NCBI RefSeq assembly: GCF_052425735.1
Contig: NC_135761.1
Span: 13,020,001-13,084,000 of the forward strand
Source of the DNA: Oculina patagonica
Taxonomy: Eukaryota
DNA length: 64,000 bases
Direction: 5' to 3'
Of this stretch, positions 979 to 60,636 are shown one piece after another. Within the stretch, counting starts at the first letter, position 1. Each line of letters opens with the position of its first letter. The notes below the pieces were generated by a model, which did no database searches, was not told where the DNA came from, and saw only the letters and a program-made list of their open reading frames with translations. The position numbers were made by a program, and so were the translations under genes.

Positions 979-1597
979 TGACTGTTAGAACATCCAAGTC
1001 TTAGTCAATACTTAATAATCACCATTAGCTTTAGTCGGTTTCTATGGTAATATTAATAATAATTGAAATAACAATAATTTGTAATACCTGCAAGCTCCAG
1101 AGAGGACAGAAATTTGCGACATATTTTTTGAAAGTCACAACTTGGCCGTCGGTCTGCAAATGATGCAGCTGTGTGAAAGAAAAATAATCAGTTAAAGATT
1201 CCGGCAAATCTGTTTTCTTGTGAGTGGCATTGTTTGGTCAGTACTAATATACTTTATAAGTTTAAAATATGGTTGTATCTGACCAAAAAAATGTTTAAAG
1301 TTATACTTAATTGTCGGCACCTTATAATATACTTTAATTGGCCAGTTTTAAAATTTTACTTACAGCTTATCACAAGTCCTATGGAAAATACACTTAGGGT
1401 GATGAAAATACCCGTTTACGAAAGTTATTTCAGTTTGTTGTTGAACAATTAAAATTTGGAACAGTTTTAAATATCTCTGCCAACATATTTTAAATCGCAA
1501 TTTGGTATCTTTTTCACGCTTCAGGAATCAAGTGAAAATTTAATAGTCCCGAGTGTAATTGTCATTTCCCCAATGAGCAAACGACAGCGTCCAAACT

Positions 1598-2008
1598 TTG
1601 AGTGTTAAGTTGCAAAAACTTCAAAACCGCGCTACAAGGATAATTTCGAAATCTAGCTATGATGCTTATACTCTTCCTGAGATTCTTGGATGGGATAGGG
1701 TCTCAGTTAGCCGAACAAAACGAAAGGCAGTTATCATGTTCAGAACACTAAACAAACTAAAGCTAACTAACGCCCCCATACATGCAAGATCTGTTCTCTG
1801 CTCGTGATTTTAACTACAGTATACGTAACTCTGAACACATTCTGCAAGTACTTAAACCAAGACCTAATTATCTTAAACGCAGTTATGGTTTATATTCCGG
1901 GGCTGTTCTTTGGAACGGGCTGCCATCTAAACTACGTAAGCCATTAACCCTTGCAAGCTTTAGAAAGGGAATTAATGACTTTTACTCCTCAACGGGCACC
2001 CACGTAAA
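1598..2008 (+). mobile_element. L2/CR1-type LINE ORF2 3' fragment
   Basis: KLQKLQNRATRII...LKPRPNYLKRSYG..SGAVLWNGLP, frameshifted. Confidence 0.8.
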
Positions 2009-2480
2009 ACAAAATTTTAATCACTTTTTACTGATGTTTCCATCGTGCTTAAATTAAGTATTGTCAATGTCAATTGTTTTGCACATATGCGAGATTATAA
2101 CTACAAGGACTTTTTACAAGTATCTTTCACGGAAGTGACAAACAGAATTGTGAGTAAAAATTGTTGTATTACAATACCATTAATTTTCGAGTTCAAGATT
2201 TTCGAGAGCTTTTTCGGAACGTATCAAGTTATATTTTTGTTTGTTTGTTATAGTTTGACTATTGAGTACGATAATAAACTCGTTCCAGTGCAGAAATTAA
2301 AGAGTCGCCATTTCTCGTATAGCTGCGTGGAGTTACTTCTAATATCTCACCCTCGAACCGGCACAGTGTTCGAAGATTTTGATCTTAAAATCCATTGCCT
2401 AAATATCCAAATATGAAGTTCTAATAATTTCCTAAGTTCAGGAGGCTCTCAGGAGGTTGACCCTCATCCTGTCAGTTTGT

Positions 2481-2702
2481 AAACAGCGTTTTTCTTTCAG
2501 CAAGTTCATTTTAACACTGTCTTGTTCTATAAAAAAGGTGCTATCTTCATCGAAAATGTTCAGACACTTAAAGTATGGGCATTAAAGCATCAAACAGCGT
2601 TTTTCTTTCAGCAAGTTCATTTTAACACTGTCTTGTTCTATAAAAAAGGTACTATCTTCATCGAAAATGTTCAGACACTTAAAGTATGGGCATTGAAGCA
2701 TC
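2481..2702. repeat. 111-bp tandem duplication (2 copies)
   Basis: aaacagcgtttttctttcagcaag... at 2481 and 2592; single copy in the partner arm near 49595-49680. Confidence 0.9.
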
Positions 2703-2918
2703 AACAATCTGTTCTCTTAACCCTTTCCCTAAACACTCCCTATCCCTACCCCGCCAAGCCTGGTTAATGTTGTTTTGTCGGTTAAAAATGCCAGACAAAA
2801 TGTCAACACCCTCAAGCAACACTGAGCAGGAAAGAGTTGTCGTGTTGGTCATTTGTCTCAGTTATATGTAGTTCTGAGGACTGTTGGTCTAAATGATTGA
2901 TTAGGTCGTAAAAACAAT

Positions 2919-3046
2919 TCAAAAATCTACCAAAAAAGACACTAAGCATGACTTGCCATAAAACTGGTTTTCAAGTACATCAATAATCTCTTCCATATCT
3001 GGTCTCCATGCAGGCGTGGGTCGCAGGCATGGGTTTATCAGGCGGG
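2919..3046 (-). CDS. Kinase copy A, 3' end of last exon (cut by the gap)
   Basis: Minus-strand translation RLINPCLRPTPAWRPDMEEIIDVLENQFYGKSCLVSFLVDF*, homologous to the last exon of copy F; not in the ORF track. Confidence 0.85.
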
Positions 3047-7866: not shown

Positions 7867-8058
7867 ATCATCCACCGCGATATAAGTAGTGCTAATGTAC
7901 TGCTACGGCGACAGGGTGACCAATGGAGAGGCAAAGTGTCAGATTATGGCACTGCTAATGTTGTCCGCCAATACACGAGAGACGATCCTGGAGCTGTGAT
8001 TTACTGCGCACCTGAGGCCATTAGTGGAGCCCAAGATCAAATCATCAGTTGTATTAAG
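7867..8058 (+). pseudogene. Kinase copy B, 5'-truncated main exon (catalytic loop onward)
   Basis: IIHRDISSANVLLRRQGDQWRGKVSDYGTANVVRQYTRDDPGAVIYCAPE..ISCIK|gt; no N-lobe or coiled coil upstream. Confidence 0.8.
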
Positions 8059-8712
8059 GTTAGCTTGGCCAAAGCAGTTAAAACCATAAAAAGAAAAATA
8101 ATTAAGGGATGGTTTGAAACTGGGAAATAAATGACTCTCTCTTAACGTGCGCGGGACACGTATGCTTTGGTAGCAAAAATTGCCTCAAGGAAGCAGAGAC
8201 GTTACATTGAAAGCACTAATTTTCATCTTTACGCGAAACATCATATGATTCGCTTCCGAGACGTATTTCTTTCCCACCCATGTAATCTAGAAAATATTGT
8301 TACCGCAATGTTTCCGCAACATTGCTCTGTGGTTTAACCTGGCCGTGGTTTCACTTGGCTTGGTGGTATCTGTAATATGAGTGGGATGATTTCATTAATA
8401 GACTAATACAGTGGAACGAAAATTGGTTTGTGAAATTGGGGGTAAAATTGCAGTATTTGACACAGGAAAGGGAAACGACTTTTGCATCGAGTTATCGAGA
8501 GGTTCAAAAAATCGAGGGTTCGAAAAAAAGCTTTTCTCGTGTTCTCCCAATATTCCAATCCGACCTTAATCTTATATGTCTTGCTGTTTTTTGCGGTTTG
8601 CAATTCGCTGGTCCTAACTAAACTGCGTTCTAGCCTGGTCTATAGTCAATACAATATAAGTTTCTGGTGATGAATCATATCGTAACTAGTGAAATGTTCT
8701 GTTATATATCAG

Positions 8713-8904
8713 GTCGATGTCTTCAGTTTTGGTGTCCTCCTCTGTGAGATGTGCATCCACGAATTGCCAGATCCCCAACAGCGTGAGATGCAAATATCCC
8801 GTATGATGAACCAGCGCGTGTTTAAAGGGATCGTTGAACGTTGTCTTTATATAGAGCCTGGAATGAGACCAAATATGGAAGAGATTATTGATGAACTCGA
8901 GTAG
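8713..8904 (+). pseudogene. Kinase copy B, last exon
   Basis: ag|VDVFSFGVLLCEMCIHELPDPQQREMQ...RPNMEEIIDELE*. Confidence 0.8.
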
Positions 8905-12819: not shown

Positions 12820-13211
12820 TTAGGCACCAAGTCTGAATAACTGTTGGCATTTGCTGATATTTACTTTTTGATACTTACTTATTCGTCATGTGTGTGGCAT
12901 GAGTGTTCAGTGTCAAACTATTTTTTTTAACTGCGTTTATTTTCCTTTCTACCATGACAAGGTTTAAAAAAAACGAAGAACGAAACCGAAGATCAGAAAA
13001 AGGATTACAACAACAAAACTGAACAACATCAACAGTACATCGGGGGCATACACCTAAAGTAAAGTGGGAAATAAGAAAGTGAGGAATCCCAAGTGATAAT
13101 TTTATACTGAGGAGTACATGCAAAGTAGAAAGGAACAAGAATATACTACGTTTCAAGAATTTGTCTCTGGAAGATAAGAAATTAAGCGGATTTCGGGAAT
13201 ACTTGAACGAG

Positions 13212-16200
13212 ATGGGGCAGTTATCGACTAAATTGCAAAGACAGGTGAAAGCGCGAAAGGAACAAAAAGGAGATGGCATGGGAAGGCACTTAATCAGAAT
13301 GGAAGAACACGACGAAGATAGGAGAGTCGCTAAAGAAGAAAGAAGAGTGTCGACAGTGCAGAAAAAACAAGTTCCTAATTTGCAAAGAGTGGAAAACCAA
13401 CAAGTTAATGACGAAGTCGCCCAACGGAAAGAGAGAAGACAAATACAACTGACATCGAAAGATCAACAAATAACACATCTGGAAAGACAAGAGGAAGGGA
13501 GAAACCAACATATTATTGATCTACAACGACAGGTGAGAGAATTTTCGGGGGGAGATCAACTAGTTTCTGATCGATATTTGAAAAGGCAAATGACAGCGAG
13601 AGATCAACATGTTACTGATTTGCAAACACAATTGACAGCGAGTGAAGAACATGTAAATGAGCTACAAAAACAATTGAAAGCGAGTGACCAACTAGTGAAT
13701 GATCTGCAGGAACAAGTGACTGATCTCCAAAAACAGTTGAGAGCGAGTGACGAACATGTGACTGATATGCAAAAACAATTGTCAGCGAGTGACCAACAAG
13801 TTTTTGATCTGCAAAAACAAGTGGAAGGGGTGAACAAACATATTACTGATCTACAAAGACAAGCGAGAGAGCAATTGACAGCGACAAAAGAACAAGTTTC
13901 TGCTCAGAAAAGACAACTTAGAGCGATGGATCAACAAGTTAGCGATCTGCAAAAACAAGTGAAAGCAAGTGAGCAACAAGTTGACGATCTGCAAAAACAA
14001 GTTACTTATCTTCAAGAAAAATTGACAGCGAGTGACCAACTAGTGACTGAACTTCAAAGGCAAGTGTCAGGGAGTTTCCACCAAGTTTCTGATCTGCAAA
14101 GTGACCAGAAGATGACTGATCTGCAAAGGCAACTGAAAGCAAGAGACCAACAATTTGCTGATTTGCAAAAGCAAAAGACAGCAAAAGATCGACTAGTGGC
14201 TAATCTGCAAAAACACGTGACAGCGAGTGAGCAACAAGTTGATGATCTGCAAAGACAAATAAAAGCGAGAGACCAACGATTTTCTGATTTGCAAAAGCAA
14301 GAGACAGTAAAAGATCAACAAGTTATTGATCTGCAAAGACAACTGAATAAAAGAGACCAGCAACTAAGTAAACTGCAAAGACAACTGACTGCAAAAGATC
14401 GACAAGCTACTTATCTGCAAACACAATTGACAGCGACTGACCAACTAGTGACTAGCCTGCAAAAACAAGTGACAGCGAGTGACCAAAAAGGTGATGATCT
14501 GCAAAGACAACTGATAGCGAGAAACCAACAATTTGCTGATTTGCAAAAGCAAGAGACAGTAAAAGATCGACAAGCTACTGATGTGCAAAGACAACTGAAT
14601 GGAAGAGAACAGCAACTTAGTAATTTGCAAAGACAACTGACTGCAAAAGTTCGACAAGCTACTGATGTGCAAAGACAACTGAAGGTGAGAGACCAACAAT
14701 TTTCTGATTTGCAAAAGCAAGAGACAGTAAAAGATCAACAAGTTATTGATCTGCAAAGACAACTGAATAAAAGAGACCAGCAACTAAGTAAACTGCAAAG
14801 ACAACTGACTGCAAAAGATCGACAAACTACTTATCTGCAAAGACAACTGAATGCAAGAAACCAGCAGGATATTAATCTGCAAAGACAACTGACTGCAAAA
14901 GATCGACAAGCTACCGATCTTAAAAGACAACTGACAGTTAGAGACCAGCGAGTTAGTGATCTGCAAGGAAAGTTGACAGAGAGAGATCGACAAGTTGCTA
15001 ACCTTCAGCGTCAGTTAAGAGAAAATGAGGAAGTTTGCTTGAGAAGGCAAGAAAGAGAGCTTACTGATTTGCAAAAGCAATGGATGACAAAGGACCGACA
15101 AGTTACTGACCTTCAAGGTCAGTCACGACAAAAAGGAAAAGACATTAGAAGGCTAAAAAGACAATCGAACAGGACAGGACAGGACATATTGAGTAGGCGA
15201 TCAAGCTGGTATGACGGAGAGCTTGCTGACCTGCAAGTGCAGCTGGAACAAAGAGACCAACAAGTTACTGGTCTGCAAGGACAGCTGACAGCGAAAAACC
15301 GACAATCGAGCCGGGATAAACGAGCGATCACAGAACTGCAAATGCAACTGGCACAAAGAAACCAACAATATACTGATCTGCAGAGGCAATGGTCGACAAA
15401 AGACCGACAAGTAACTGACCTTCAATGTCAGTTAAGAGAAAGAAGAGAAGTTTTCAGAAGGCTGACTAGTCAATCGAGCAGGGATGAACGGCAGATTACT
15501 GAGCTTCAAATAGAGCTGGCACAAATCAATCAACAATTTACAGAACTGCAAGGACAAGTGACAGAGAGAGAGCGACAAGTCACTGACGCACGGCGTCAGT
15601 TAAGAGAAAATGAGGAAGTTTGCTTGAGAAGGCAAGAAAGAGAGCTTACTGATTTGCAAAAGCAATGGATGACAAAGGACCGACAAGTTACTGACCTTCA
15701 AGGTCAGTCACGACAAAAAGGAAAAGACATTAGAAGGCTAAAAAGACAATCGAACAGGACAGGACAGGACATATTGAGTAGGCGATCAAGCTGGTATGAC
15801 GGAGAGCTTGCTGACCTGCAAGTGCAGCTGGAACAAAGAGACCAACAAGTTACTGGTCTGCAAGGACAGCTGACAGCGAAAAACCGACAATCGAGCCGGG
15901 ATAAACGAGCGATCACAGAACTGCAAATGCAACTGGCACAAAGAAACCAACAATATACTGATCTGCAGAGGCAATGGTCGACAAAAGACCGACAAGTAAC
16001 TGACCTTCAATGTCAGTTAAGAGAAAGAAGAGAAGTTTTCAGAAGGCTGACTAGTCAATCGAGCAGGGATGAACGGCAGATTACTGAGCTTCAAATAGAG
16101 CTGGCACAAATCAATCAACAATTTACAGAACTGCAAGGACAAGTGACAGAGAGAGAGCGACAAGTCACTGACGCACGGCGTCACTTAAGAGGAAACGAGG

Positions 16201-16943
16201 AAGAATTCAGAAGGCTGCGAAGTCAATCGAGCCAGGATGACCGAGAGATTACTGACCTGCAAATGCAATTGGCAGCAACGGACCTAGAAAGGGACCAACA
16301 TGTCGCTGACTTGCAAAGACAAGTAGACACGATGAGAAATCGTGCGACTGAACTACAACAAACTCACACGCACGGCTGGGTAATAAATCGGAATGAAATA
16401 ATGCTTAAAACAGATGAACTTCTGGGAGAAGGTGCATGGGGGAGAGTTGTTCAAGGAAAATTTCGCCGCAGTAATGTTGCTGTAAAACAAATCCATGAAG
16501 TCCTTCTGTCTCGTTACAGCAGGACAGTTTTTGAGCGAGAAGTGGGTATTGCTTCAAGATGCCGCCATCCGTGCTTGCTGCAGTTTATTGGAGCAATCAA
16601 CGATGATGAAGGACTATTGCTAGTAACGGAACTCATGGATCGTAGCTTGAGATCACTGTACGAAGAGCGACCACTCACAGAAAGGGAAATTTCTGTTATT
16701 GCGCTGGATGTAGCTCAAGCACTAAACTACCTTCATCAATACAAACCCGATCCCATCATCCACCGTGACATCAGCAGTGCAAATGTGTTGCTATGGCGAC
16801 AGGGTGAGCAATGGAGAGGCAAAGTGTCAGATTTTGGCACTGCTAATGTTGTCCGACAATGCACAAGAGACGATCCTGGAACTGCGATTTACTGCGCACC
16901 TGAGACCCTTGGTGGAGCCCGGGATCAAATCATCAGCTGTAAG
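13212..16943 (+). CDS. Kinase copy C main exon: ~1050-aa coiled coil + TKL-type protein kinase (~1311 aa with last exon)
   Basis: ATG in MGQLST; heptad repeats; GEGAWG, VAVK, HRDISSAN, DFG, APE; donor aag|gttagc. Confidence 0.9.
15008..16183 (+). repeat. Apparently perfect in-frame 585-bp (195-aa) tandem duplication within copy C
   Basis: Identical translated blocks at offset 585; identical antisense ORFs at 15119/15704 and 15201/15786. Confidence 0.95.
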
Positions 16944-17572
16944 GTTAGCTATGTATACTCTCGGTAATATACTCGGCGGCCTTGGGCAAAGCAATCAATG
17001 ACTTCATATTTTAAAAAATAAGAGGAAACATTTGTATGATTTCTCATTGTTGATTTATCATTGAAGTAAATTGGTTCTAGTTCAATTAGGGGGCGTTCTA
17101 ACATATTTGCGTACTGCTTTAAAATATATGTAATCACATTATTTTGGACTTCTTGATGAATACATTCCTGCTTAAATTATACCCCACACCAAGAGAATAT
17201 TCATTTTCTCTTGCCCACAAGCAGTGGCTTAATCTTTCTTTCTTTTTTCGAGAAATCCTAAACGTATTGGTTAACAATGTAGTTATTGCACATCGATACT
17301 GCACAATATGAATTCCCTCAGTGTTAATGTCTGCAGTGAATAACAGGAGTGATAGAAGCCACAAGAACATCAGATGTCATCCTTTTTAGTTTTGGAATAA
17401 ATGTCATTTGTTTTCCGCCTGTTATGTTTGGTTAGTTTGAAGTCCATTAAGTTCTCTTACTGGTTTGGTTTATAATTACAATTAAAGTGAAATAGATATA
17501 TATCGCTGGTGATTATTTTTCATTCCAACTGTCATGCTACCAAAACTAGTGAAATGTTCTGTTATATATCAG

Positions 17573-17776
17573 ATCGATGTTTACAGTTTTGGTGTCCTCC
17601 TTTGCGAGATGTGGATCCGAGAATTGCCAAGTCCCCAACAGCGTGGAATGCAAATATCCCGTATGATGAACTGCTGGTTTCAAGAGCTCGTGATACGCTG
17701 TGTGCAAATAGAGCCTGGGACAAGACCAAATATGGAAGATATGATTGATGGACTCGAGTATTTTGTGGTTCCTTAA
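17573..17776 (+). CDS. Kinase copy C last exon
   Basis: ag|IDVYSFGVLLCEM...RPNMEDMIDGLEYFVVP*. Confidence 0.88.
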   Translation: MDVYSFGVLLCEMWIRELPSPQQRGMQISRMMNCWFQELVIRCVQIEPGTRPNMEDMIDGLEYFVVP

Positions 17777-22119: not shown

Positions 22120-22917
22120 ATGGGACAGCAACTGAGTAACCTGCGAAGCCAAAGACGACAAATTACTGACCTGCAACGTCAATTACGTGAAAAAGACCAA
22201 ACTATCACAAATCTGAGAAATCAGTCCAGGGTGGAGGACCTTCAGATTACTGCCCTGAATATCGAAGTGGCAACAAGGGACCAACAAGTTGCTCACTTGC
22301 AAAGTCAAGTAGACACGCTGAGAACTCGTGTGACTGAACTAGAACAGACTAACTCGCGTGACTGGGTGATAAATCTGAATGAAATAAGCTTAATGCGAGA
22401 TGAACGGCTTGGGAAAGGTGCATGGGGGAGTGTTTACCAGGGAAAATTTCGCCGCTGTAATGTTGCCGTAAAACAAATACACAACGAAGTTCTTAACAGG
22501 GCGTATTTTGAACGAGAAGTAGGCATTGCTTCAAGATGCCGCCATCCTTGCTTGTTGCAGTTTATTGGAGCAACCAACGACCAAAGGCCATTGATAGTAA
22601 CGGAGCTCATGGAAGGTAGCTTGAGATCATTATATGAAGAGCGACCACTCACTGAAAGGGAAATATCCGTTTTTTCGCTGGATGTAGCTCAAGCACTAAA
22701 CTATCTTCACCTATTCAACCCCAATCCCATCATCCACCGCGATATTAGTAGTGCCAATGTGTTGTTATGGCGACAGGGTGACCAATGGAGAGGCAAAGTG
22801 TCAGATTATGGCACTGCTAATTTCGTACGGCAATGCACGAGAGACGATCCTGGAGCTGTTATTTACTGCGCACCTGAGACCCTCAGTGTAGCACAGAATC
22901 AAATTATCAGCTGTAAG
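22120..22917 (+). CDS. Kinase copy D main exon: ~80-aa N-terminal coiled coil + TKL-type kinase (~330 aa total)
   Basis: MGQQLS start; GKGAWG, VAVK, HRDISSAN, DYG, APE; donor aag|gtcagt. Confidence 0.9.
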
Positions 22918-23565
22918 GTCAGTAGCTTATTCTTATTTGTACTTGGCAAAAGTACTCTTCTACGCCTTCTTCGACCGAACACTAGAAAAGGTTCAATTTG
23001 AGCAACTTCAAATGCGATACCTGTAATTGGATACCTACGTCACTCATGCGTCAATTGCGAGCATTTTTAAATAGGTTCTTTCCCGCTGTCTCTGTGCTGT
23101 TTTGTTAAACTGATTGCCTTAAATTATTGACATTTTTACTAAACGTAGTTTCCTCCAGACCTCCCAAACATTGGCTCTTGTTATTGTTACAAATAATACG
23201 TATCTGAACCTCGTGTAGTACAATTCAAAGATTAATTTCAAATTCAAGGAGTTCAGTTTCGAGATCGACCAAGTGCTGCGCGCTCAGTTGATTTCGGAAT
23301 TATTCGTCTGATTACATTCTGAATTGTACTTCAGTCGGTCCAATTACCATTACTTATCATCACCACCATCACACCAAACGAGGAATGCAGCTGACATGAA
23401 ACACAAGTGTGAACGTAAATTAGAACTTCTCAGTAAAGTTACACGAAGAAACTTAAAAAAGGACATATCACGCGATGACATGTTGACAGCAACATGCCGT
23501 CTCAGTCACATCGGCCATTTGCGGAGTTAAATGGTTGTAAAAGTATTGAATTCTTTCCTTAATAG

Positions 23566-23760
23566 GTTGATGTGTACAGTTTTGGCGTTCTTCTCTGTGA
23601 AATGTGCATCCGGGAATTGCCAGATCCTCAAAGGCGTGATGAACAAGTCAGACGAGTGGCAAACCAAAGGCTTCTGAGACGCCTGATAACACCATGTCTG
23701 CAAGCCACGCCTGGATCAAGACCAGATATGGACGAAATTATTACTGAACTTGAAAACTAA
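23566..23760 (+). CDS. Kinase copy D last exon
   Basis: ag|VDVYSFGVLLCEMCIRELPDPQRRDEQV...RPDMDEIITELEN*. Confidence 0.88.
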   Translation, partial: VDVYSFGVLLCEMCIRELPDPQRRDEQVRRVANQRLLRRLITPCLQATPGSRPDMDEIITELEN

Positions 23761-26925: not shown

Positions 26926-29324
26926 TGTCTAGGAAAATTACGAAAAACAGAAGAAAAAGTTTCCTTTCTTCAAATACAACTGCAAGAAAAGGACAAACAT
27001 TTGACTTACCTGCAGAGACAACTACAAGCAATGGAGCGACAAATTAGTGATCTCCAAAGACAAGTGACAACGATAGACCAACAAGTTGGTGATCAGCAAA
27101 GACAACTGGCACAAAGAGACCAATGTGTTACTGATCTTGTCAGACAAGTGACAGCGTTAGACCAACGAGTTACTGATCTGCAAAGACAAATGGGAGCAAG
27201 AGACCAACATGTTACTGCTCTGCAAAGAAAACTTACAGCGAAAGACCAACAAGTCACAGGTCTGCAACGACAACTGACAGAAAATGACCAACAAGTTACA
27301 GATTTGCAAAGAAAACTGACAGCGAGAGACCAAGAAGTGACTGATCTGCAACGACAATTTACAGCGAGGGAGCAGCAAGTAACAGATCTGCAAAGACAAC
27401 TGACAGAAAGAGACCAACAGTTTACAGATCTGCAAAGACAACTGACAGAAAGAGACCAACAAGTTACAGATGTGCAAAGACAACTGACAGATAGAGACCA
27501 ACAAGTTACAGATCTTCAAAGACAAATGACAGAAAAAGACCAACAAATTACAGATCTGGATAGACAACTGACAGAAAGAGACCAACAACATTCACATCTG
27601 GAAAGACAACACACAGAAAGAGACCATCAAGTTACAGAGCTACAAAGACAACTGAGAGAAAGAGACCAGCAAGTTACAGATCTGCAAAGACAACTGACAG
27701 AAAGAGATCACCAAATTACAGATCTGTATAGACAACTGACAGAAAGAGACCAACAAGTTACAGATCTGCAAAGACAACTGACAGAAAGAGACCAACAAAT
27801 TACAGATCTACAAAGACAACTGACAGAAAGAGACCAAGAAGTCACTGATCTGCAAAGACAACTGACAGAAAGAGACCAACAAGTTACAGATCTGCAAAGA
27901 CAACTGACAGAAAGAGACCAACAAGTTACAGATCTGCAAAGACAACTGAAAGAAAGAGACCAACAAGTTACAGATCTGGATAGACAACTGACAGAAAGAG
28001 ACCAACAAGTTACAGATCTGCAAAGACAACTAACAGAAAGAGACCAACAAGTTACAGATCTGCAAAGACAACTGACAGAAAGAGATCAACAAGTTACAGA
28101 TCTAGAGAGACAACTGACAGAAAGAGACCAACAGTTTACAGATCTGCAAAGACAACTGACAGAAAGAGATCAACAAGTTACAGATCTAGAGAGACAACTG
28201 ACAGAAAGAGACCAACAGTTTACAGATCTGCAAAGACAACTGACAGAAAGAGACCAACAAGTCACAGATCTGCAAAGACAACTGACAGAAAGAGACCAAC
28301 AAGTTACAGATCTGCAAAGACAACTGAAAGAAAGAGACCAACAAGTTACAGATCTGGATAGACAACTGACAGAAAGAGACCAACAAGTTACAGATCTGCA
28401 AAGACAACTGACAGAAAGAGACCAACAAGTTACAGATCTGCAAAGACAACTGACAGAAAGAGATCAACAAGTTACAGATCTAGAGAGACAACTGACAGAA
28501 AGAGACCAACAGTTTACAGATCTGCAAAGACAACTGACAGAAAGAGATCAACAAGTTACAGATCTAGAGAGACAACTGACAGAAAGAGACCAACAAGTTA
28601 CAGATCTGCAAAGACAACTGACAGAAAGAGACCAACAAGTTACAGATCTACAAAGAAAACTGACAGAAAGAGACCAACAAGTTACAGATCTGCAAAGACA
28701 ACTGGACACGGCGAGAGAACGATCCAGTCAGAATAGACATATAATTCAACGTGACTGGGTAATAAATCGAAATGACGGTAACTCTCATGGCAGATGACCG
28801 GCTTGGGGAAGGTGCATGTGGGGAAGTTTCTCGAGGGAAATTTCGCCGCAGTGATGTTGCTGTAAAAAAATCTATGACATACTCTTGTCGACCCCTTACA
28901 TGATTACAAGTTTTGAGCGAGAAGTGGGCATTGCCTCAAGATACCGCCATCCTTGCTTGTTGCAGTTTATTGGAGCAATCAACGATGATGAAGGGCTATT
29001 GCTAGTGACGACACTCATGGATCGTAGCTTGAGATCACTGTATGAAGAGCGACAGCTCACTGTAAGGGAAATTTCCGCTATTTCGCTGGATGTAGCTCAA
29101 GCACTAAACTACCTACACCAAAACAAACCGATCCCATTATCCACCGCGATATAAGTAGTGCCAATGTACTGCTACGGAGACAAGGTGACCAATGGAGAGG
29201 CAAAGTGTCGGATTATGGCACTGCTAATGTTGTCCGTCAGTGCACCAGTGACGATCCTGGAGCTGTGATTTACTGCGCACCTGAGGCCATAAGTGGAGCC
29301 CAAGATCAAATCATCAGTTGTAAG
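26926..29324 (+). pseudogene. Kinase copy E main exon: ~610-aa repeat coiled coil + kinase with two frameshifts
   Basis: +1 shift near 28775 (stop at 28797) and -1 shift near 29128 (aaaccgatccc vs aaacccgatccc); no MGQ start found. Confidence 0.8.
27040..28705 (+). repeat. 42-bp coding minisatellite (QVTDLQRQLTERDQ), ~40 units, with a 378-bp higher-order repeat
   Basis: Unit caagttacagatctgcaaagacaactgacagaaagagaccaa; variant units recur at 27946/28324 and 27973/28351 (offset 378 = 9x42). Confidence 0.95.
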
Positions 29325-30112
29325 GTTAGCTTGGCCAAATCACTTACATCGATTTTACTACAAAGAGTAAAATAAGGGATGGTTTGAAATTGGGAAAAAT
29401 ACACTTCTTTAGGTACGCGGGAACATATGGCTCGGAAGAAAAAATTGCAAAAACGGTGCTGTGAAAAAGCAGTTTCATCTTTGCGTGAAATATCATAATT
29501 ATTACCTTCCAAAACGTTTTTCGCTGCGTGTAATGTAGGAAATAGGGCGTTTTATGGTATAACCTTCACAGCGGTCAAACGCAAAAATTGACGTCACATC
29601 CGGTCTTCTCCGCCTCGAACTTTTGACTCGAAAGTGGGCAAACTTTTGTAAGAAATTGTTAAAGAAATAGTACGGTGAAAGAACAGTTCAAGCTGGGACA
29701 CTCAGTGGAGATGAATTATCAAATTTCCAATCCATAAGCGGTGTATAAACCTTAACTTTCCAGGGACGGCGTTAACTTTTGGCTTTAAAGCGAAAGTTTT
29801 CGGAAAATTTAAGCCTTTGTATGGAAACATTTTAGCGGGAATTGCACAGTAACTGCGCACGCGCGGTGCGTTTGACCGCTGTGTGGGTATAACCTGGCTG
29901 TGGTTTAACCTGGTCTGGTGACTCATTGACTTCGCTTTCATGGGTAGGGCCTAAGGGTGATGGGTGGAAGGAGCTTGGACTAATAGCTATACAATTTGAC
30001 CTTAACCTCGAATGTCCTATTGTGTTTTCTGCATGTTGCCATTTGTAGTCTTAACTCTAGTAATAAAAATTCAAAACCCTGCGCAGCGTAGGTGCTGAAT
30101 GTATAAACGATA

Positions 30113-30187
30113 AAAATGTAAATACTACGCTGTAGTCAAAAAACTATTCCCTATAGTTTTTTGACTACAGCGTAGTATTTACATTTT
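30113..30187. repeat. Perfect 35-bp inverted repeat (5-nt loop) in a small insertion with 18-bp flanking direct repeats
   Basis: Arms 30113-30147 and 30153-30187; tttgtagtcttaactcta at 30042-30059 and 30185-30202. Confidence 0.9.
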
Positions 30188-30348
30188 GTAGTCTTAACTC
30201 TACTGCGTTATTGCCTGGTTTGTAGTTAATAAAACCAGAAATAAACTTCTAATACAACTGAAATTGAAATTCCTGGCGTTGATTAAGATTAATACCTTTC
30301 CGTTGTCATACACTATTTTGAGAAGTGAAATGTTTTGCTGTTTGTCAG

Positions 30349-30537
30349 GTTGATGTTTTCAGTTTTGGTGTTCTTCTCTGTGAGATGTGCATCCAAGAAT
30401 TACCAGATCCCCAACAGCGTGAGATGCAAATATCCCGTATAAACCAGCGTCTGTTTAAAGAAATCGTTGAACGCTGTGTGCAGATAGAGCCTGGAACAAG
30501 ACCAAATATGGAAGAGATTATTGATGAACTTGAGTAG
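30349..30537 (+). pseudogene. Kinase copy E last exon
   Basis: ag|VDVFSFGVLLCEMCIQELPDPQQREMQ...EEIIDELE*. Confidence 0.8.
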
Positions 30538-45876: not shown

Positions 45877-48156
45877 ATGGGACAAACATTACCTACACTC
45901 CAGAAAGAAGAACTACGGGTGAGAGTGCAAATGGACGAGGAAGTCACTAACTTGGAAAACCAGTTAACCAGGAATGAAGATATGAAAGAGATGCGAGTGA
46001 ATCATGAAAAGGCTATTTCTGACCTAAGAAGACAATTGAATGTGAAGGACCTACAAATTACTGACTTACGGAGTGACATGGAACAACAACTGATAGATAA
46101 TCGTGAATTGCAACAGCAATTTAAAATTTCAAAAGAGCAGTTAACAAAACAAGAGACAGAGAAAGCAGTTCAACAAGAACGTCTAAGATATTTGGAAATA
46201 CAAAGGTCAGAAGAGAAAAAGCAAGTAAAAATTTTGCGTGGACAAGTACAAAATCTAAAGACTGAGCTAGGCACTAAAGATAAAAAACTAAGTCGTTTAG
46301 ACACAGAGCGTGTAGATATGCAAGAACAGCCAAGAAAACTGCAAGAACAATTAAAGGAAAAAGACACTGAAGAACTAAGTGTTACTTATCAGCAAGGTCA
46401 ATTTAGAGACACAACTAGACAGACAAAAGACTTACCAACTCAAATTACTAACCTGCTAAAACAGTTACAAGAAAAACAGAAATGTACGAAAAAGGTTGAA
46501 AAACAGTTAAAAGGAGAACAAAATCGAGCTTATAAACTGGAAAGTGAGTTAGGTGCACACAAGCATCAACTGCCACAAAATCAGCATCAATTTGCTTACA
46601 TACAAAGAGAATTAGGAAAAGGGGACACAGAAAATGAACACGAGCAATTAAAGGTAAAACACCAGCAGGTTAGTCAGCTGGATAGGCAGTTAATAATAAG
46701 AGAACAACAGTTGGAGGCGAAACAAAAAGAATTGACTGATCTAAAACTACAATTGAAGAGAAACGATGCTGAAAAAGCATCCTTAAAGACACAGATAGGA
46801 GAGGAAGGTAAACGAGTTCACAGTCTACAAGGGCAGTTAAAAACTAAAGAAGAGGAGTTGGCAGTCTTGAAACAAAAATTACAAGAAAGAGATATAGAAA
46901 GGGAAAAATATCAGCAATGTACTCAGCTGGAGGCAGATTTGAACGCAAAAGAGCAAGAGTTAGAAAAAATGCAAAAACAATTAAAAGGAATAAAAAGAGA
47001 TAAAGATAAATTGCAGGGTCACTTAAGAGTGCAACAGAGCAAAAACGAACAACTGGTACAGAAGCAAGAGCAACTGAATAACTTGCAAGAACAATTACGA
47101 AGAAAAGACAAAGACGTTGGGACCTTAGAGCAACAGCTAACAGTGCAAAAGCAACGTGTTAGTGATCTGCAAAGTCAGTTAACTGGCATACAAGAGCAAT
47201 CACAAGAAAAACACCAACAAATTATTGATATGCAAAGACGGATGGACACAATAAGAGAACAATTAGAACAAAATGAGAGGAAGGAGGAACAAGTGGAAAA
47301 AACATTGAATAGCTGCCAAGAACAAATACAAGCAATAACAGCTGAAAATGAAACTTTACAGGAACAGTTACGACGAACACAGGGACAAGTTTCTGAGCTG
47401 GAAAGTGACTTAAGAACAAAAGAGCAAGGACTGGCATTGAAGACAGAGCAAGTGACTCACCTGGAAGAACAATTACACGAAAAGGACGAACAAGTAAGTG
47501 ATCTCCAAAGACAAGTGGGCACGATGAGAGATCGTGTCAATGAACTAGACCGAACTTACTCCAGTGAGAATCGACGTACAATTCCAAACGACTGGGTAAT
47601 AAATCGAAAAGAAATTCAAATGACAGAAGAAGAGCTTGGGTTTGGAGCATGGGGAAGAGTTGTTCAAGGAAAATTTCGCCGCAGTAACGTTGCTGTAAAA
47701 CAAATCCATGAAGTCCTTCTGTCTCCTCACAGTAGGACAATTTTTGAGCGAGAAGTGGGAATTGCTTCAAGATGCCGCCATCCTTGCTTGTTGCAGTTTA
47801 TTGGAGCAACCAACGATGATAAAGGGCTATTGCTAGTGACGGAGCTCATGGATCGTAGCTTGAGATCACTGTATGAAGAGCGGCCACTCACTGAAGGAGA
47901 AATTTCAGTCATTTCGCTGGATGTAGCTCAAGCGCTAAACTATCTTCACCAAAACAAACCCAAACCCATCATCCACTGTTACATCAGTAGTGCAAATGTG
48001 TTGCTATGGCGACAGGGTGACCAATGGAGAGGCAAAGTGTCGGATTATGGCACTGCTAACTTCGTCAGGCAATGCACCAGAGACCATCCTGGAGCTGTGA
48101 AATACTGCGCACCTGAGGCCCTTGATGGAGCAGAGATTCAAATTATCAGCTGTAAG
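45877..48156 (+). CDS. Kinase copy F main exon: ~570-aa coiled coil + predicted pseudokinase (~840 aa total)
   Basis: MGQTLP start; GFGAWG, VAVK, DYG and APE retained; catalytic loop reads HCYISSAN; donor aag|gtaggt. Confidence 0.88.
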
Positions 48157-48384
48157 GTAGGTAGCTAGGTACTTTTTATTCAGCATTAATTATCAATTAT
48201 TTCTTTCATGCCTGCTTTATTAAAGTTCGGTCGTCTTAAATATCGGCTGGAGATGTGCAAAATGAAGAAATTAAAAATTACTCAAATGTGGAACGGCGTA
48301 GAAGACGGATCTCCAATGTTGATTCCTGCCGTTTTAGAGTTATTTTGTACAATGTGCCATGCATACTTACCAACGTACAGACTT

Positions 48385-48655
48385 TATTAGCTCGTCCCCA
48401 CGGGGCTTTTCAGGGTCTAAGTACATTACAAAATTAAAAAAAAAGCAGAAAGCTTTATCACACATGACAATAATGACGTGAAAAGAAGACAAAGATTGAA
48501 TATAAATTAAATAAAACAGTCACTAAAATGCTTTCGCCTGAGTAGGCGCTTGAAATCCGTCACAGATGGGCTATGTTTGACTGCAGGCTGCAACTCATTC
48601 CACAGAGAGGTCGCTCTATATTGAAAAGTCCTTTGACCGCTAGCAGTGCTAACTA
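48385..48655 (-). mobile_element. L2-like LINE 3' end in the intron of copy F
   Basis: SGQRTFQYRATSLWNELQPAVKHSPSVTDFKRLL on the minus strand. Confidence 0.65.
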
Positions 48656-48954
48656 AGAGATTTAATGATTCTACAGCTCGAATATCACACCTTTCAATCT
48701 CAAATTTGGTGTATAGTATCTCTGTTTAACTCCTGTTAAACCACATTTTTCTTTTTTGTGTGGATCGTTTAAAAGCCGAAAAAGTTATCAATTCTGTGCA
48801 CGTGTCCATACATTGCCTGTAACTAAATAACTCTTGTGGTGGTTAAGCGTGGTTTTCAATAAGGAATCACGAGGCTATTTCCCCTCGTCTTTCGTTGTTT
48901 GTGCGAGAAAGACTGCTGGTTTAAACGCAGCATTGTGTTTGGCTCTGTTTTTAG

Positions 48955-49197
48955 GGCGATGTTTACAGTTTTGGTGTTCTTATCTGTGAAATGCACATCC
49001 GGGAATTGCCAGATCCACAAAGGCGTGATGGACAAGTCAAACGCTTTAAGAACCGGAGGCTTCGGTCCCACCTGATAATCCCATGTCTACGACACAAGCC
49101 TGCATGGAGACCAGATATGGAAGAGATTATTGATGAGCTTGAAAACCAGTTTCATGGCAAGTCATGTTTAGTGTATTTTTTGGTAATTTTAATTTGA
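48955..49197 (+). CDS. Kinase copy F last exon with hydrophobic C-terminal extension
   Basis: ag|GDVYSFGVLICEMHIRELPDPQRRDGQV...ELENQFHGKSCLVYFLVILI*. Confidence 0.85.
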   Translation, partial: GDVYSFGVLICEMHIRELPDPQRRDGQVKRFKNRRLRSHLIIPCLRHKPAWRPDMEEIIDELENQFHGKSCLVYFLVILI

Positions 49198-56132: not shown

Positions 56133-56339
56133 CCCCTGGATCCGCCCCAGAAAGGAGAGATACAAGGTTATCCACTTAATGTGACCGCCATCCTCGTCGG
56201 CAAAATTTAGCATTTGCAGAACAAACAGAGACACGATTTAACAACATAACGTTTTAGTCCGCCATTCAAGATGGCCTCCTTGTGAAAAGCTCATGGTCAC
56301 TTCCAAATAAGGAAATACCATACATGGACATACACTACA
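52275..56339 (-). mobile_element. Degenerate Ty3/Gypsy LTR retrotransposon (gag-PR-RT-RH-IN), 3'-truncated
   Basis: gag start MAVTLSG at 56191; CCHC knuckles; VIIDSGA protease; KVFSKLDL/IHDDI RT; YSQFEREALAV RNase H; HVGHQG..CHPC integrase; PBS-like TGCCGACGAGG at 56192-56202; probable LTR 56206-56339. Confidence 0.9.
55177..56150 (-). mobile_element. hAT-type transposon remnant inserted in Gypsy gag, 5-bp TSD
   Basis: 16-bp TIRs CTGGGGCGGATCCAGG; AAAGG duplicated; degenerate hAT dimerisation motif (STLKLVK..L) on the minus strand at ~55580-55685. Confidence 0.75.
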
Positions 56340-56383
56340 GTTGCTTGGCACATATCATTTACCATCAATTGACTTTCTTTCAG

Positions 56384-56522
56384 ATGCATTCTTTGATCCA
56401 AACTACGACATGTGTTACTGTACTGAGTGTCACGAAGCCCGGGGCGATAAGCTCTACTACACTCGCGGGGATCCTCCAAAGGCCTATGGGATTCCAATAG
56501 GATGGTGTCGATTTGGGCTCAA
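56384..56522 (+). CDS. NEURL4-type ADP-ribosyltransferase-like gene, first visible exon
   Basis: tttcag|(D)AFFDPNYDMCYCTECHEARGDKLYYTRGDPPKAYGIPIGWCRFGLK|gtaaat. Confidence 0.8.
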
Positions 56523-56850
56523 GTAAATATACCGCTTGATAAGTTTAAGCTACATTCAGAGTTGAGAATAGAGTAGTAAAACTTCATAATAATGTTGTAG
56601 ACACTTTTGAAGTTGAAGCCCAATTGGAAGTTCGAATTTCTCACACATATATTTCCCATTTCATAATTATAGCAACACGGCACACACTGAAGGACCAACT
56701 CCAAACAAACACTAAAATAATTATGTAGTTTACGAGTAAATCAGTGTGTTCCTACAATGATTTCAATACTCTTCTTTGAATTTCTACGAGATAAGTCGGA
56801 TAGGTGAATTCGTGAAGTTTTCTTCCTTTTAAACATACATATATTTTTAG

Positions 56851-56966
56851 GGAGCAACCTCGAGCTTCTGCCCTTGGTGTGTTTGACAAATGGCACGTAG
56901 CATTCCATGGCACAAGACTGTCAAGCGTCAATGCAATCCTTAAATGTGGCGATCTTCTTATTCCAG
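56851..56966 (+). CDS. NEURL4-type ART-like gene exon (FHGT motif)
   Basis: EQPRASALGVFDKWHVAFHGTRLSSVNAILKCGDLLIP; phases 2 and 1 match the neighbouring exons. Confidence 0.82.
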
Positions 56967-57579
56967 GTTTATAATTATTTATATCTGTGTGTGTGTGTTT
57001 TACCATAAATGTGCTAATTTACTTCCTTCAATTCCTGTGAGCGTTCCGGCTTCTTTTGAAAACTCAGAGAAAAAGTTGTGCATTTCATCGCAATCCACTG
57101 TTCGAAAAATGCAATAATTTAAGTGTTTAGGTACCCAAGGTGCTCAAAGGCGACCAGCACAATATCCTCTTTTGTCCATGCTCAGTTAAGATGATAGAAG
57201 GAACTGTTTTTCTAACATTGTATGCAGTTTATTCTCTTTATTATGTTTCTTGTACCAAGTTTTGTAACGTATACCTGCAGGTTTTTAGCGTTTATTTGTA
57301 GGAAATTCAGGGGGGAGATCTTCTGATTTGATTTTTGTTTTTAATCTAATTTGCAATTAAATTTGATCAATGCACGATATTTTCACTGGGTTAGCCTTGA
57401 TTCATATTGCTAGGCTAGTGTCTGGCGTGCAGAACAAATCCTGAACCTCCTCAAACAATTTCCACCTTGCAAAGTTTATCCTGTGCTTGCAAAAATGCCA
57501 TCCCTGATTTAGTTATCGATATGCAATGCAATTGCAATTGCAATTTTAATTTTAATGTCCATACGTGGGACGAGGTCTC

Positions 57580-58215
57580 CCTCAATGTCCGAGCCAAAGG
57601 CTCATGTATAAAACGTAGAACTAAACGTGAATTAAAATAGACTTAAGTATATGCTATTAAAAATATATATATATAAAAAAATAAATAAAAAATAAAAAAA
57701 AATTCTCCCACCCATTAAAAAAAGAATGAAAAACAAGAACAATACTAATACCACCCCCCTTCCCTTACCCCATACTGTATAATTAGTTTGAATCAATGAT
57801 CAAGTGATAAAATATATATAAACGCACAAGGATAAAAACTGATAAAAATACATCAAAGGGTTAAAATATAAGTAGATCTAAGATAAACAATGGCTACATT
57901 TACAGCTTGTCTTAAAATTATCAAGATTAAAAGTGTTCAACCTTTTGCGAAAATCGTTTAAGTTCGTTGATTGTTTGATGTAAACAGGGAGTTGGTTCCA
58001 TAAGTGTGTTAATTTATATGTAAAAGAATTATGGTAAAATCTGTTATTATATGAGGGTTGGACAAGGTTGTGACCTCCGTTCCTTAAGCTATAACGCAAG
58101 GTACGTTGTTCAAATAAGTTTGAAATGTAGCTAGGTCCGTTGTTCTTAACGCAGTTAAATAAAAGATATAGCGACTGCAGAAGTCTTCTATTTTCAAGAG
58201 ACTGCATATTAGCTA
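57580..58215 (-). mobile_element. L2/CR1-type LINE 3' fragment in ART intron
   Basis: SLENRRLLQSLYLLFNCV...FYHNSFTYKLTHLWNQLP (ORF 57878-58207). Confidence 0.75.
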
Positions 58216-58607
58216 ATGACCAAAGTGTGGCTCTTTTTTCTTTTCTTAGACGTGAGTATCAAACTGTTCAGTGAAGAAACCCACCTTCCATTTGCTGAAT
58301 CGATGCAAATGTTGGCGCAATTTGTTAGAATTCATAGAAGCGTACCGGCCACACCTGTTTCACCCCCAGGAGGAACATGCGTGAAATTACAGTACATTTC
58401 CAGCAAGTTTTAGCCAAGGTTAAATCACCATAGTTAAGACTCATTTAACCTTTTAGTTGGTCTGCTGAGCTTGTCTGAGGGCCTTCCTTTCCATAATTCG
58501 TCGGGAGATAAATGGGAAACTATAGATTAAAGAATTATAATAGACTCCTTTGATTCGTTATACTTTTTAATCTAGCACTTTTCTTCATATTTCATTTCTC
58601 TGTGTAG

Positions 58608-58755
58608 GGGATATTGCACTCGGAGGAAGGGAATTAAGCGAGGAGGAAGGACATTTCAATGAAGATAGAAAACCGCCAGGATTTAACACAAAGCAGATCT
58701 TTGTATCACCGAGTGTTCGATACGCTGGACACGACATTTACGCACAACCCAGCAG
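58608..58755 (+). CDS. NEURL4-type ART-like gene exon (IFVSPS motif)
   Basis: GDIALGGRELSEEEGHFNEDRKPPGFNTKQIFVSPSVRYAGHDIYAQPS; phases 1 and 2 match. Confidence 0.82.
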
Positions 58756-58936
58756 GTTTTTCCGTGTCCCCTTTTTCGGTTTTGTTATTCATTTTTCTTA
58801 TTTATGTATGCATGCTTCTTTTCGGCCTCACTCCTAATACCCTAGGACACGTTTCTCCAATCCCCAATCCTCTTCCGAGTAAGAATCTAAGATGGCGCCC
58901 GATCAAAATGCGTTCGAATATGGTCACTAAATACGC

Positions 58937-59709
58937 TAGACTTGCTCCAAGTCGCTCGTTAGATTCGCAGGAGACCGCTGGATACAGAAACGGAGGGCGC
59001 GCGCGGGCATGAGAAACAAAATGGCGGAGGATCGTTGCGGAACGAGCGACTTGTCTCACCTGCAGCGCGCCAATTCTGAAATATGGCATCACCGGTGGAT
59101 TTTTCCACCGGTGACGCCATCGAGATTATGTCAATCATATTGTATTGCGCGCGAACTTACTGAGCGCGCTGTGCCCGCCAACTTAGCGCGCGCTGCTCGC
59201 GAGACAAGCTTGCGTTTAACTTTTCACCTCTTTCACCTCAGTTAAACCGTTTTAGAACAAACAACACAAATGTCTTTTTTTGTGCATGTCTCTTTTAAAT
59301 CTTACAGAAATGAGAGAGCCATCAAGGGCCTTGAGTATGATTTCCCACAAAAAAGGAAAGAAAAGCGCAATTTTAACACACGCCACAGCGCGCGTCAGCT
59401 GCACACGGCGCACGAAACTGACGTCAATACGATAAAAGAAACCAATTCATTGCACACAAGCATGATGCAATTTTTCGCGGCAATAAACGTCAGCCAGAAT
59501 CGATTTCCTGCAAGTGACACAAGTCCGAGCTTTTCCTAACTGTTTGTTTTCCTTCGCGCGCGTGTTCACAGAAATGAATCACGCGCGATCTCTCGCGCGC
59601 GATTTCAAAGGTGATTTTACTCAAGTGGTCTCTCTCGCTTGATTTCAAAGCGATTTTATTTAAGTAACTATAGATGCAAAGAAAAAACGAGCGACTTGGG
59701 ACAAGTCTA
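58937..59709. mobile_element. MITE with 24-bp imperfect TIRs and 9-bp TSD (taaatacgc)
   Basis: tagacttgctccaagtcgctcgtt / aacgagcgacttgggacaagtcta. Confidence 0.85.
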
Positions 59710-60401
59710 TAAATACGCCTGCTTTGCAGGCTAATTTTGCATTGCAAGGCTAAGTTTACTAAGGACCGGTACCGGTTCTTAATGAATTTAGCCTAAATAT
59801 CGGATCGATCTCGTCCACGTTGAGCCCAGTGTCTGTGCCACCTAGTATTCGGTCCAGTTTATTTTGATTTCTGAATGCGCCGAAAAAGCAGGTTCACACA
59901 GACGGAAGAAAAATGCTAAACTGGCCGGCCTGGGACCGGCTGTGCAGTTTTGTGTATTTTGCGAATGATTGGCTGGTGTAAATAACTGATTTCATAACTA
60001 TGATGTAGTAGAAGACCGCAGTACTGGGGCAGTCCATGTAGTGTGAAAAAATACGCATATTACCATGAACGACTGCTGTCCCGCCGGGACAAGGTTTCGG
60101 GCTGGAACCATTAAGATGCACGTGTATGTCTTTTATCTGTAGCGCACTATCACCGTGAATATGTAATATTATTATAAAAAAATCAGTGAAATACCAGGAA
60201 ATCTTTCGCGAAAAAATCATATCTTCACACGTGAAAAAGAAAAACAAGTTATTTTCATATGTGAAGATATCGATTTCGAAACATTTTCTGACAAGTTTGC
60301 CCTGTTTCAATGCTGAATGAGCCAAAGTAAATCGATATTAAGGCGAAACATCTTCACATTTGATAACTTGTTAATACATTGTTTATGGGTGTAATTTCTA
60401 G

Positions 60402-60636
60402 TTTTGAAGACCCATCGACGAAGAAGAAATTTGCTGCCAAAACAGTTCTTCAGCTGCGCATTAACCCGAAAAGTTACGAAGATGGACCACAGACAGTCGG
60501 TGCTACAGAGCAGATCGACACGCATTTTAAAAATAAGGAACTTGAATGGTCTACCAGGGAACGTGGGGCCATAATTTTATATGGACTTCTCGTTAAACTT
60601 GAAGAATGCGAAGAACTTGATTTTGTTCCCATCTAA
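60402..60636 (+). CDS. NEURL4-type ART-like gene last exon (ELEW motif)
   Basis: FEDPSTKKKFAAKTVLQLRINPKSY..GPQTVG...KELEWSTRERGAIILYGLLVKL...*; AATAAA overlaps the stop. Confidence 0.85.

Follow-up and report, generated by a model that had tools for sequence, protein, structure and literature searches.

When a kinase gene loses its catalytic aspartate with its reading frame and remaining motifs intact, has its product been given over to a non-catalytic role or has the gene begun to die? This question is raised by copy F (LOC144648153/ACROYT_G012328), a member of a tandem kinase array in the coral Oculina patagonica, in which the His-Arg-Asp (HRD) triplet of the kinase catalytic loop reads His-Cys-Tyr (HCY). 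We analysed a window of 64,000 nucleotides that contains F (contig C4:13,020,001-13,084,000), and positions given below are those of the window unless the contig is named. An earlier note, made from the letters of this stretch, had described F as a pseudokinase next to active paralogues and had proposed that it could be a decoy or regulator of the neighbouring copies C and D or, alternatively, a gene in early decay. To our knowledge pseudokinases make up about a tenth of animal kinomes, and almost all of the studied cases are ancient. F, as a paralogue just past the loss of its catalytic Asp in a fast-evolving array of intact to dead copies, would be a snapshot either of the birth of a pseudokinase or of the death of a kinase gene; as things stand, it represents an ordinary kind of event with an unproven function.

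The explanation that we tentatively favour is that F may be a newly made pseudokinase which probably binds nucleotide, is dead or nearly dead in phosphotransfer, is held open and folded by selection, and acts via its coiled coil, perhaps together with an ADP-ribosyltransferase (ART)-like module encoded downstream.

Copy F lacks the catalytic aspartate in an intact kinase frame

Positions 47968-47988 of F read atc atc cac tgt tac atc agt, and 47968-48006 (+) encode I-I-H-C-Y-I-S-S-A-N-V-L-L. Copy C, the nearest paralogue, has cac cgt gac at 16761-16769, and the other paralogues have cac cgN gaY. Compared with C, two adjacent codons are changed in F, cgt to tgt (C>T at a CpG, Arg>Cys) and gac to tac (G>T, Asp>Tyr), exactly as the earlier note had read them. 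These substitutions remove both the RD arginine and the aspartate that serves as the catalytic base.

The remainder of the gene is intact. F was called protein-coding by two annotation pipelines, and HCY is present in each of the resulting proteins, KAL9975198 (944 aa) and XP_078363909 (1066 aa). The spliced frame comprises 840 codons in two exons with zero internal stops (Table 1), and no stops, frameshifts or lost splice sites were found across these codons and the GT..AG intron. The product of exon 1 is identical to residues 1-760 of proteins P0002 and P0121, and the DNA similarity of the paralogues to F stops at the exon-1 donor of F. The glycine-rich loop, the VAVK lysine, the alpha-C Glu, the activation segment from DYG to APE and the DVYSFG motif are all kept (Table 1), as are the Asn of SSANVLL in the catalytic loop and the Arg of subdomain XI. 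The description of an unbroken frame of about 840 residues with its splice sites, VAVK, DYG and APE in place was thus borne out, and so was that of a pseudokinase sequence beside paralogues of the active type, since C and D both keep HRD.

The Pkinase profile (Pfam PF00069) matched P0121 with E=8.1e-33 and 114 bits over residues 583-815, covering profile positions 3-232 of 263 and both lobes, and it matched the product of exon 1 alone with E=3.6e-25. The top matches of the F kinase domain among structures in the PDB were TNNI3K, CTR1, TAK1, BRAF/RAF1 and IRAK4 (E 2e-24 to 1e-17, bit scores 65-90), with the tyrosine kinase CSK interleaved. Because the nearest solved structures are TNNI3K, CTR1, TAK1 and RAF, the family of F is assigned, as judged from its nearest characterised kinases, to the tyrosine kinase-like (TKL) group. 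Ahead of the kinase domain, the N-terminal 570 residues of F matched only generic coiled-coil families in Pfam, all of them below the cut-off. An AlphaFold2 model of the kinase domain built on a 46-sequence alignment had a mean predicted local distance difference test score (pLDDT) of 50 and a predicted template modelling score (pTM) of 0.30, and was too poor for use.

At the level of sequence, a pseudokinase is defined by the absence of at least one of the VAIK Lys, the HRD Asp and the DFG Asp. F is a pseudokinase by this definition, with the HRD Asp gone and the VAIK Lys and DFG Asp kept. As VAVK and DYG are retained and only this single motif is lost, F is predicted still to bind nucleotide, probably ATP; everything needed for the fold and for nucleotide binding appears to be present, and phosphate transfer would be very poor or none. 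The prediction of lost transfer rests on the established role of the HRD Asp in catalysis.

The HCY triplet is confined to F. Across 245 kinase domains from 242 related coral and anemone proteins, the catalytic motif was HRD in 238, HRN in two, HHD in two, HGD in one and HCY in two, the last being the two annotated versions of F. When the whole assembly was searched by pattern, TGT TAC in a catalytic-loop context turned up at the F site alone, and the exact 23-mer around HCY gave 0 matches to JGI metagenome contigs. Other variants of the catalytic loop recur at low frequency in this kinase family: P0009 and P0010, which are ENA proteins from other samples with 70-73% identity to F, have HHD and so lack the RD Arg with the Asp kept, the second kinase domain of P0001 and of P0004 has HRN, and that of P0005 has HGD.

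Retention of all nucleotide- and Mg-binding residues would also fit an F that is still active, with another residue as base or with weak residual activity of the kind reported for HER3 or the JH2 domain of JAK2; catalytic-Asp mutants of kinases generally keep a small fraction of their activity. We nevertheless consider activity highly improbable, as F and the two HRN entries are the only ones of the ~245 domains without the Asp, which the HRD, HHD and HGD domains all keep, and as the Tyr side chain would be expected to sit at the position of the substrate hydroxyl.

The HCY allele is present in independent sequence data

The confirmation of HCY from reads that the earlier note called for was sought in Logan contigs of four sequencing runs (X1, X2, X8 and X10), which were compared with positions 45600-51500. 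Contigs cover the F intron, so the analysed runs are DNA. Run X1, from the same organism as the reference, matches the reference exactly over 2 kb, and because it is identical over kilobases it probably derives from the sequenced individual. At 47977 its non-C depth is ~26x, which equals the depth of flanking unique contigs (23-30x). Run X2, obtained from the same organism in 2017 by another study, contains a 172-nt contig (47847-48018) with 0 differences from the reference. In run X8, which carries the label of another organism (organism B), a 241-nt contig (47791-48031) has 4 differences (98% identical) and also lacks the Arg codon, and the depth of this contig (45.9) is exactly the depth at 47977 that is unaccounted for by C.

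These data show that the HCY allele is real and is present in X1, X2 and X8. The exact X2 contig, the single-copy depth in X1 and the near-identical contig in X8 refute the idea that HCY is an error of the assembly or consensus or a private variant of somatic origin; nothing was found in favour of this idea, and we give it practically no weight. A rare private HCY allele is likewise unlikely.

Many of the C and G calls at 47977 and 47980 come from paralogues, which are locally 85-92% identical to F. We attempted to read heterozygosity in X1 from depths and dropped this measure as uninterpretable, since unitig depths sum over paralogues. X1 and X8 each have exactly one contig with C at 47977 and without G at 47980, and no assembled paralogue fits all linked sites of that contig. 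Such a contig could come from an F allele that reads H-R-Y, from the exon 1 of copy A that a run of N conceals, or from a paralogue of the HRN type, and we claim no H-R-Y allele.

Age of the change and tests for constraint

When the coiled coil of F was compared with 5.8 billion proteins, only F itself was matched, and the kinase part, used at full length and as a short window, found nothing above 81% identity in the protein database besides the annotations of F. With no orthologue in the protein collection, the timing of the HRD loss cannot be read from other species. Because HCY occurs only in F and the coiled coil has no orthologue, the HCY change appears lineage-specific and is probably young. 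The gene itself is an old duplicate by its branch length, with synonymous divergence (dS) of 0.19 and nonsynonymous divergence (dN) of 0.072 on its terminal branch.

Several features suggest that this old gene with a recent lesion may still be under constraint. At sites conserved in the six nearest paralogues F has 7 private replacements, as many as C and the paralogue L003 and fewer than the paralogue L007, and thus its replacements in the fold are not raised. The catalytic loop and the activation segment account for four of the seven, namely R>C, D>Y, D>H (RDDPG to RDHPG) and I>K before YCAPE. A fold that is kept with an active site that is released is the pattern expected of a retained pseudokinase. 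The frame of F is moreover rich in K, E and Q codons, such that 6% of possible single substitutions create stops. In simulations of neutral drift, with indels not counted, the probability of an intact frame was 0.22 at 1% divergence, 0.057 at 2% and 0.007 at 3.5%, and the intact state of this stop-prone frame therefore bounds any neutral age to less than ~2% divergence. Between O. patagonica (organism A) and organism B, 4 of 241 sites in the kinase exon are different (1.7%) and the adjacent F-specific intron diverges by ~6-7% plus 41 gap letters, in a comparison that draws on few Logan contigs whose haplotype phase is not established. If those contigs represent one haplotype, the contrast is suggestive of an exon that was constrained when HCY was already present.

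On the explanation that we favour, selection would still maintain the open frame and the fold of a kinase-like domain, with the active site released, and F would be a newly born pseudokinase that serves as a non-catalytic scaffold or regulatory module on its coiled coil, possibly with the downstream ART-like domain. We infer the loss of activity, the retention by selection and any partner from the sequence.

Early pseudogene decay, the alternative offered by the earlier note, accounts for much of the same material. F would have lost its function recently, perhaps by the Asp>Tyr change itself, and would since have drifted neutrally with its frame open for want of time. The uniqueness of HCY among the ~245 domains, the lack of an orthologue outside the lineage, the additional radical replacements I>K and D>H at conserved positions, the loss of the ancestral stop and the presence of plainly dead neighbouring copies all fit this account, as do three findings described below (no T-bearing contig in organism C, no RNA-labelled run with F, and a pseudogene control with an omega like that of F), and at a neutral age of 1% divergence or less the frame would be expected intact with P of 0.2-0.5. 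It fits poorly with the unraised replacements in the fold and, if HCY is older than the separation of the A and B haplotypes (introns ~6-7% apart), with the frame and the exon, because neutrality would then predict a broken frame (P of intactness ~0.007) and an exon as diverged as the intron. We regard decay as somewhat doubtful and still as a serious contender.

Besides the limits of the exon-intron comparison, several observations weigh against the reading of F as a retained pseudokinase. The first is the behaviour of dN/dS (omega), which was estimated by branch with our own maximum-likelihood implementation of GY94 F3x4 on 12 paralogues and 263 codons. Omega was 0.25 on the background and 0.38 on the F branch (95% confidence interval ~0.21-0.68; p=0.18 against the background, p=0.002 for a value below 1), and L015, an array copy that serves as pseudogene control, gave 0.30, also below 1 (p=0.005). 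Because this evident pseudogene behaves like F, we do not count omega as evidence for retention, and it equally gives no help against decay. The test is powerless against recent inactivation, as a brief neutral phase at the end of a long branch goes unseen; on the branch of F, up to ~0.1 dS of neutral time fits the confidence interval. Second, the last 136 nt of exon 1 acquired 3-4 changes on the O. patagonica lineage, two of them non-synonymous, and among them is I>K at a site that is elsewhere invariant. In organisms B and C the contigs carry the ancestral T at 48101 and lack both I>K and two further changes, so I>K and its two neighbours are very recent on this lineage.

Third, in run X10 (organism C) T was absent from both 47977 and 47980, as was the F-type aaa from 47962-64, although this run contains the F intron at ~95% identity. 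Either the orthologue in X10 has retained HRD or coverage may be missing at this place, and, given organism C, the HCY allele may be polymorphic or very recent. Fourth, no run on record as RNA was found to contain the 3.5-kb stretch of F, an outcome that does not show silence. Finally, the array is visibly subject to turnover, with copy E frameshifted, copies A and B reduced to fragments, and L015 and another paralogue, L023, interrupted by stops. Taken together, the selection tests are indecisive and cannot tell a retained pseudokinase from a gene just starting to decay, and the data do not show fixation of HCY across the genus.

The 3' end of F and the ART-like domain

The paralogues stop directly after ELE(N), and this stop is lost in F and copy A only. 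Straight read-through in F adds 18 residues, mostly hydrophobic, up to the TGA. The RefSeq model XP_078363909 instead leaves exon 2 after NQFH via a G/GCAAGT (GC) donor after 49156 and continues through a GC-AG intron and an 81-nt exon into the ART-like exons. This joining, which the earlier note did not mention, would be another possible reason why the frame has stayed open.

If F is such a fusion carrier, selection would act on the coiled coil and the ART-like module, and the kinase domain would be kept in frame and folded with its catalysis unneeded. The existence of the RefSeq model, the canonical splice sites and fitting phases of the bridging exon, and the state of copy A all point in this direction. 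Copy A shares with F the PAWRP motif, the lost stop, the G/GCAAGT donor and the bridging exon, and an ART-like gene lies downstream of it as well, in the sequence that directly precedes the window (C4:13015820-13018945, minus strand). The kinase exon 1 of copy A would be expected in or past the run of N at 3047-3546. Since this tail, donor and bridging exon recur in copy A, the arrangement is older than the duplication that links F and copy A. Additionally, the ART-like domain is a promiscuous C-terminal module, its homologues forming the C-termini of Neuralized/SPRY, LRR-ZU5, PARP14-like and glycosyltransferase (GT4) proteins. These points are opposed by the GenBank annotation, which has two separate genes, by the lack of a kinase domain in all 17 long ART-like homologues scanned, and by the proposed introns of 2.1 kb and 5 kb, which are filled by repeats and contain a retroelement. 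Since copy A is conserved no more strongly than the duplicated DNA as a whole (~84% identity), its likeness to F is uninformative on splicing. On balance we think it unlikely that F serves as a fusion carrier.

A more specific form of the fusion, which we consider decidedly improbable, would make F the first example of a coiled-coil, pseudokinase and NEURL4-type ADP-ribosyltransferase-like protein, in which the dead kinase would sense nucleotide or act as a scaffold and in this way control an ART-like effector, within a coral gene array of immune type. Loss of the stop and gain of the GC donor would have captured the ART-like exons and rendered kinase catalysis dispensable; the fusion, if real, would therefore readily explain why the frame is open and the active site relaxed. 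If it is true that F joins an ART-like module, signalling of the phosphorylation type and of the ADP-ribosylation type would be linked in cnidarian innate immunity.

Mobile elements lie both in the proposed introns and elsewhere in the window. Retroelement open reading frames (ORFs) lie at 53416-54843 (-), inside the RefSeq-proposed intron, and at 35083-36712 (-); one retroelement ORF has a CCHC zinc knuckle and an aspartic-protease-like DSGA motif, and another is gag-like with zinc knuckles and lies beside a second long ORF. A short inverted-repeat element resembling a miniature inverted-repeat transposable element (MITE) lies at 49300-49470, has a summed contig depth of 30,000-150,000 in all four runs and is among the most abundant repeats in these corals.

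The kinase array around F

The kinase exon of F has at least 42 matches genome-wide, mostly at C4 12.9-13.6 Mb. Members of the family have kinase domains 60-83% identical to that of F, share with it the position of the intron before DVYSFG, and are auto-named 'probable serine/threonine-protein kinase DDB_G0271682 / drkA / shkB-like' (cnidarian coiled-coil TKL). Searches of the literature on the O. patagonica genome, cnidarian TKL expansion and coral pseudokinases found nothing on this coral kinase family. Among 30 paralogues examined, Arg-Asp is present in all except L015, which is the second copy of the array without a catalytic Asp and has an in-frame TGA in its kinase exon (Table 1). The DNA identity of F to any paralogue is at most 84%.

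General precedent and the genomic neighbourhood are what recommend a decoy or switch for C and D, in which F would pair with its active neighbours or bait a pathogen effector by analogy with ZED1/RKS1 or IRAK-M; the kinase surface of F is 74-83% identical to those of C and D. The coiled coil, which is the likely pairing module, argues otherwise, as its 560 residues have no DNA similarity to C, D or E and 26-39% protein identity to them. F also split from C and D long ago, as judged from the dS of 0.19 on its terminal branch. Its neighbours in the window comprise kinase paralogues, transposon ORFs and the ART-like gene, and no guard-type or partner gene for F is evident among them. With dissimilar coiled coils, no orthologue outside the lineage, no RNA-labelled run found and no evident partner gene, the proposal of the earlier note that F could be a decoy or regulator of C and D found no support, and we consider it very unlikely.

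Two observations concern the N-terminal region. F starts with MGQTLPT at 45877 and copy C has NEMGQLSTK (13161-13300); by what we take to be the N-myristoylation consensus, G-x-x-x-[ST], C fits and F has Pro at the critical position. In organisms B and C, one contig each skips ~470 nt of the F coiled coil (46479-46950), and a pair of 33-nt direct repeats lies at 46490-46522 and 46964-46996, with an in-frame spacing of 474 nt. Unequal exchange may have produced a 158-residue in-frame length polymorphism of the coiled coil.

Table 1. Coordinates of copy F, its motifs, the downstream exons and the paralogous copies. Positions are those of the window except for L015.
Feature	Position	Strand	Remarks
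Copy F exon 1	45877..48156	+	From ORF list and translation; ATG at 45877, 760 codons; ~560-residue coiled coil, then kinase domain up to subdomain VIII
Gly-rich loop GFGAWG and VAVK lysine, kept	47638..47700	+	GFGAWG 47638-55, VAVK 47689-700; invariant alignment columns
Alpha-C Glu in FEREV, kept	47743-57	+	
HCY triplet (cac tgt tac), replacing HRD	47974..47982	+	Direct read; H 47974-76, C 47977-79, Y 47980-82
Activation segment DYG to APE, kept	48040..48117	+	SDYG 48040-51 (DYG 48043-51), APE 48109-17; F-specific D>H (RDHPG) and I>K (GAVKY)
Copy F intron 1	48157..48954	+	GT..AG; donor AAG/GTAGGT, acceptor TTTTTAG/G; specific to the F locus
Copy F exon 2	48955..49197	+	Kinase C-lobe, DVYSFG ... 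WRPDMEEIIDELEN; ends in TGA (49195-97); RefSeq leaves after NQFH
DVYSFG, kept	48958-75	+	In exon 2
Bridging exon of XP_078363909	51297..51377	+	81 nt; canonical AG and GT sites; reading phases fit
NEURL4-type ART-like C-terminal domain, four exons	56314..60633	+	Separate gene in GenBank; joined to F in RefSeq
Copy A, inverted duplicate of the 3' part of F	1089..3046	-	Exon-2 tail and bridging exon; cut off by N run 3047-3546
Bridging exon, paralogous copy (copy A)	1178-1089	-	Same splice sites
Paralogue B, fragment	7867..8901	+	End of exon 1 and exon 2 only; similarity match
Paralogue C, HRD kept, frame open	13203..17770	+	1268-codon exon 1 plus exon 2
Paralogue D, HRD kept, frame open	22141..23757	+	ORF and translation comparison
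Paralogue E, clear pseudogene	26944..30534	+	Kinase exon frameshifted, in-frame stops (2 TGA within match)
L015, pseudogene control	G000:C4:13258882-13262430		HRN; in-frame TGA in kinase exon; second array copy without catalytic Asp

Comparison with known systems

The kinases nearest to F in structure, TNNI3K, CTR1, TAK1 and RAF, are only moderately identical to it in sequence and differ in that they are active, carry HRD, have accessory domains of other kinds (ankyrin, EDR1, RBD/C1) and lack a long N-terminal coiled coil. In the catalytic loop, PIIHRDLNSHNILL of TNNI3K aligns with PIIHCYISSANVLL of F.

MLKL, which acts downstream of RIPK3, resembles F in having a pseudokinase domain after an N-terminal helical region. 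In MLKL, however, this region is a four-helix-bundle killer domain and DFG is absent, whereas F has a 560-residue generic coiled coil like that of its active paralogues and has kept DYG. A four-helix-bundle executioner domain was not among the Pfam matches of the N-terminal 570 residues, and by this sequence measure F is not of the RIPK3-MLKL type.

ZED1 and RKS1, plant receptor-like cytoplasmic kinases (RLCK XII-2) guarded by the nucleotide-binding leucine-rich repeat protein (NLR) ZAR1, are like F kinase-dead members of expanded, clustered kinase families. Their setting is innate immunity and they are defined by a guard NLR and by a pathogen effector that acts on the decoy, in contrast to F, for which no such partner was identified in the window and which belongs to another kinase family and another kingdom. 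As judged from its sequence, F is not a member of either the ZED1/RKS1 or the MLKL system.

A closer likeness is found in IRAK3 (IRAK-M) and IRAK2, which, like F, are TKL paralogues of active kinases (IRAK1/4) that have lost the HRD Asp and kept the fold and the nucleotide-binding residues. IRAK3 and IRAK2 act non-catalytically next to their active relatives, a mode of action that we propose for F. The IRAKs differ in being ancient and vertebrate-wide, in pairing through death domains and in having proven functions, whereas F is young, lineage-specific, built on a coiled coil and known from its sequence alone. The system to which F does belong is the cnidarian coiled-coil TKL family, in the same array as its relatives, where F alone carries HCY and F and copy A alone lack the family stop.

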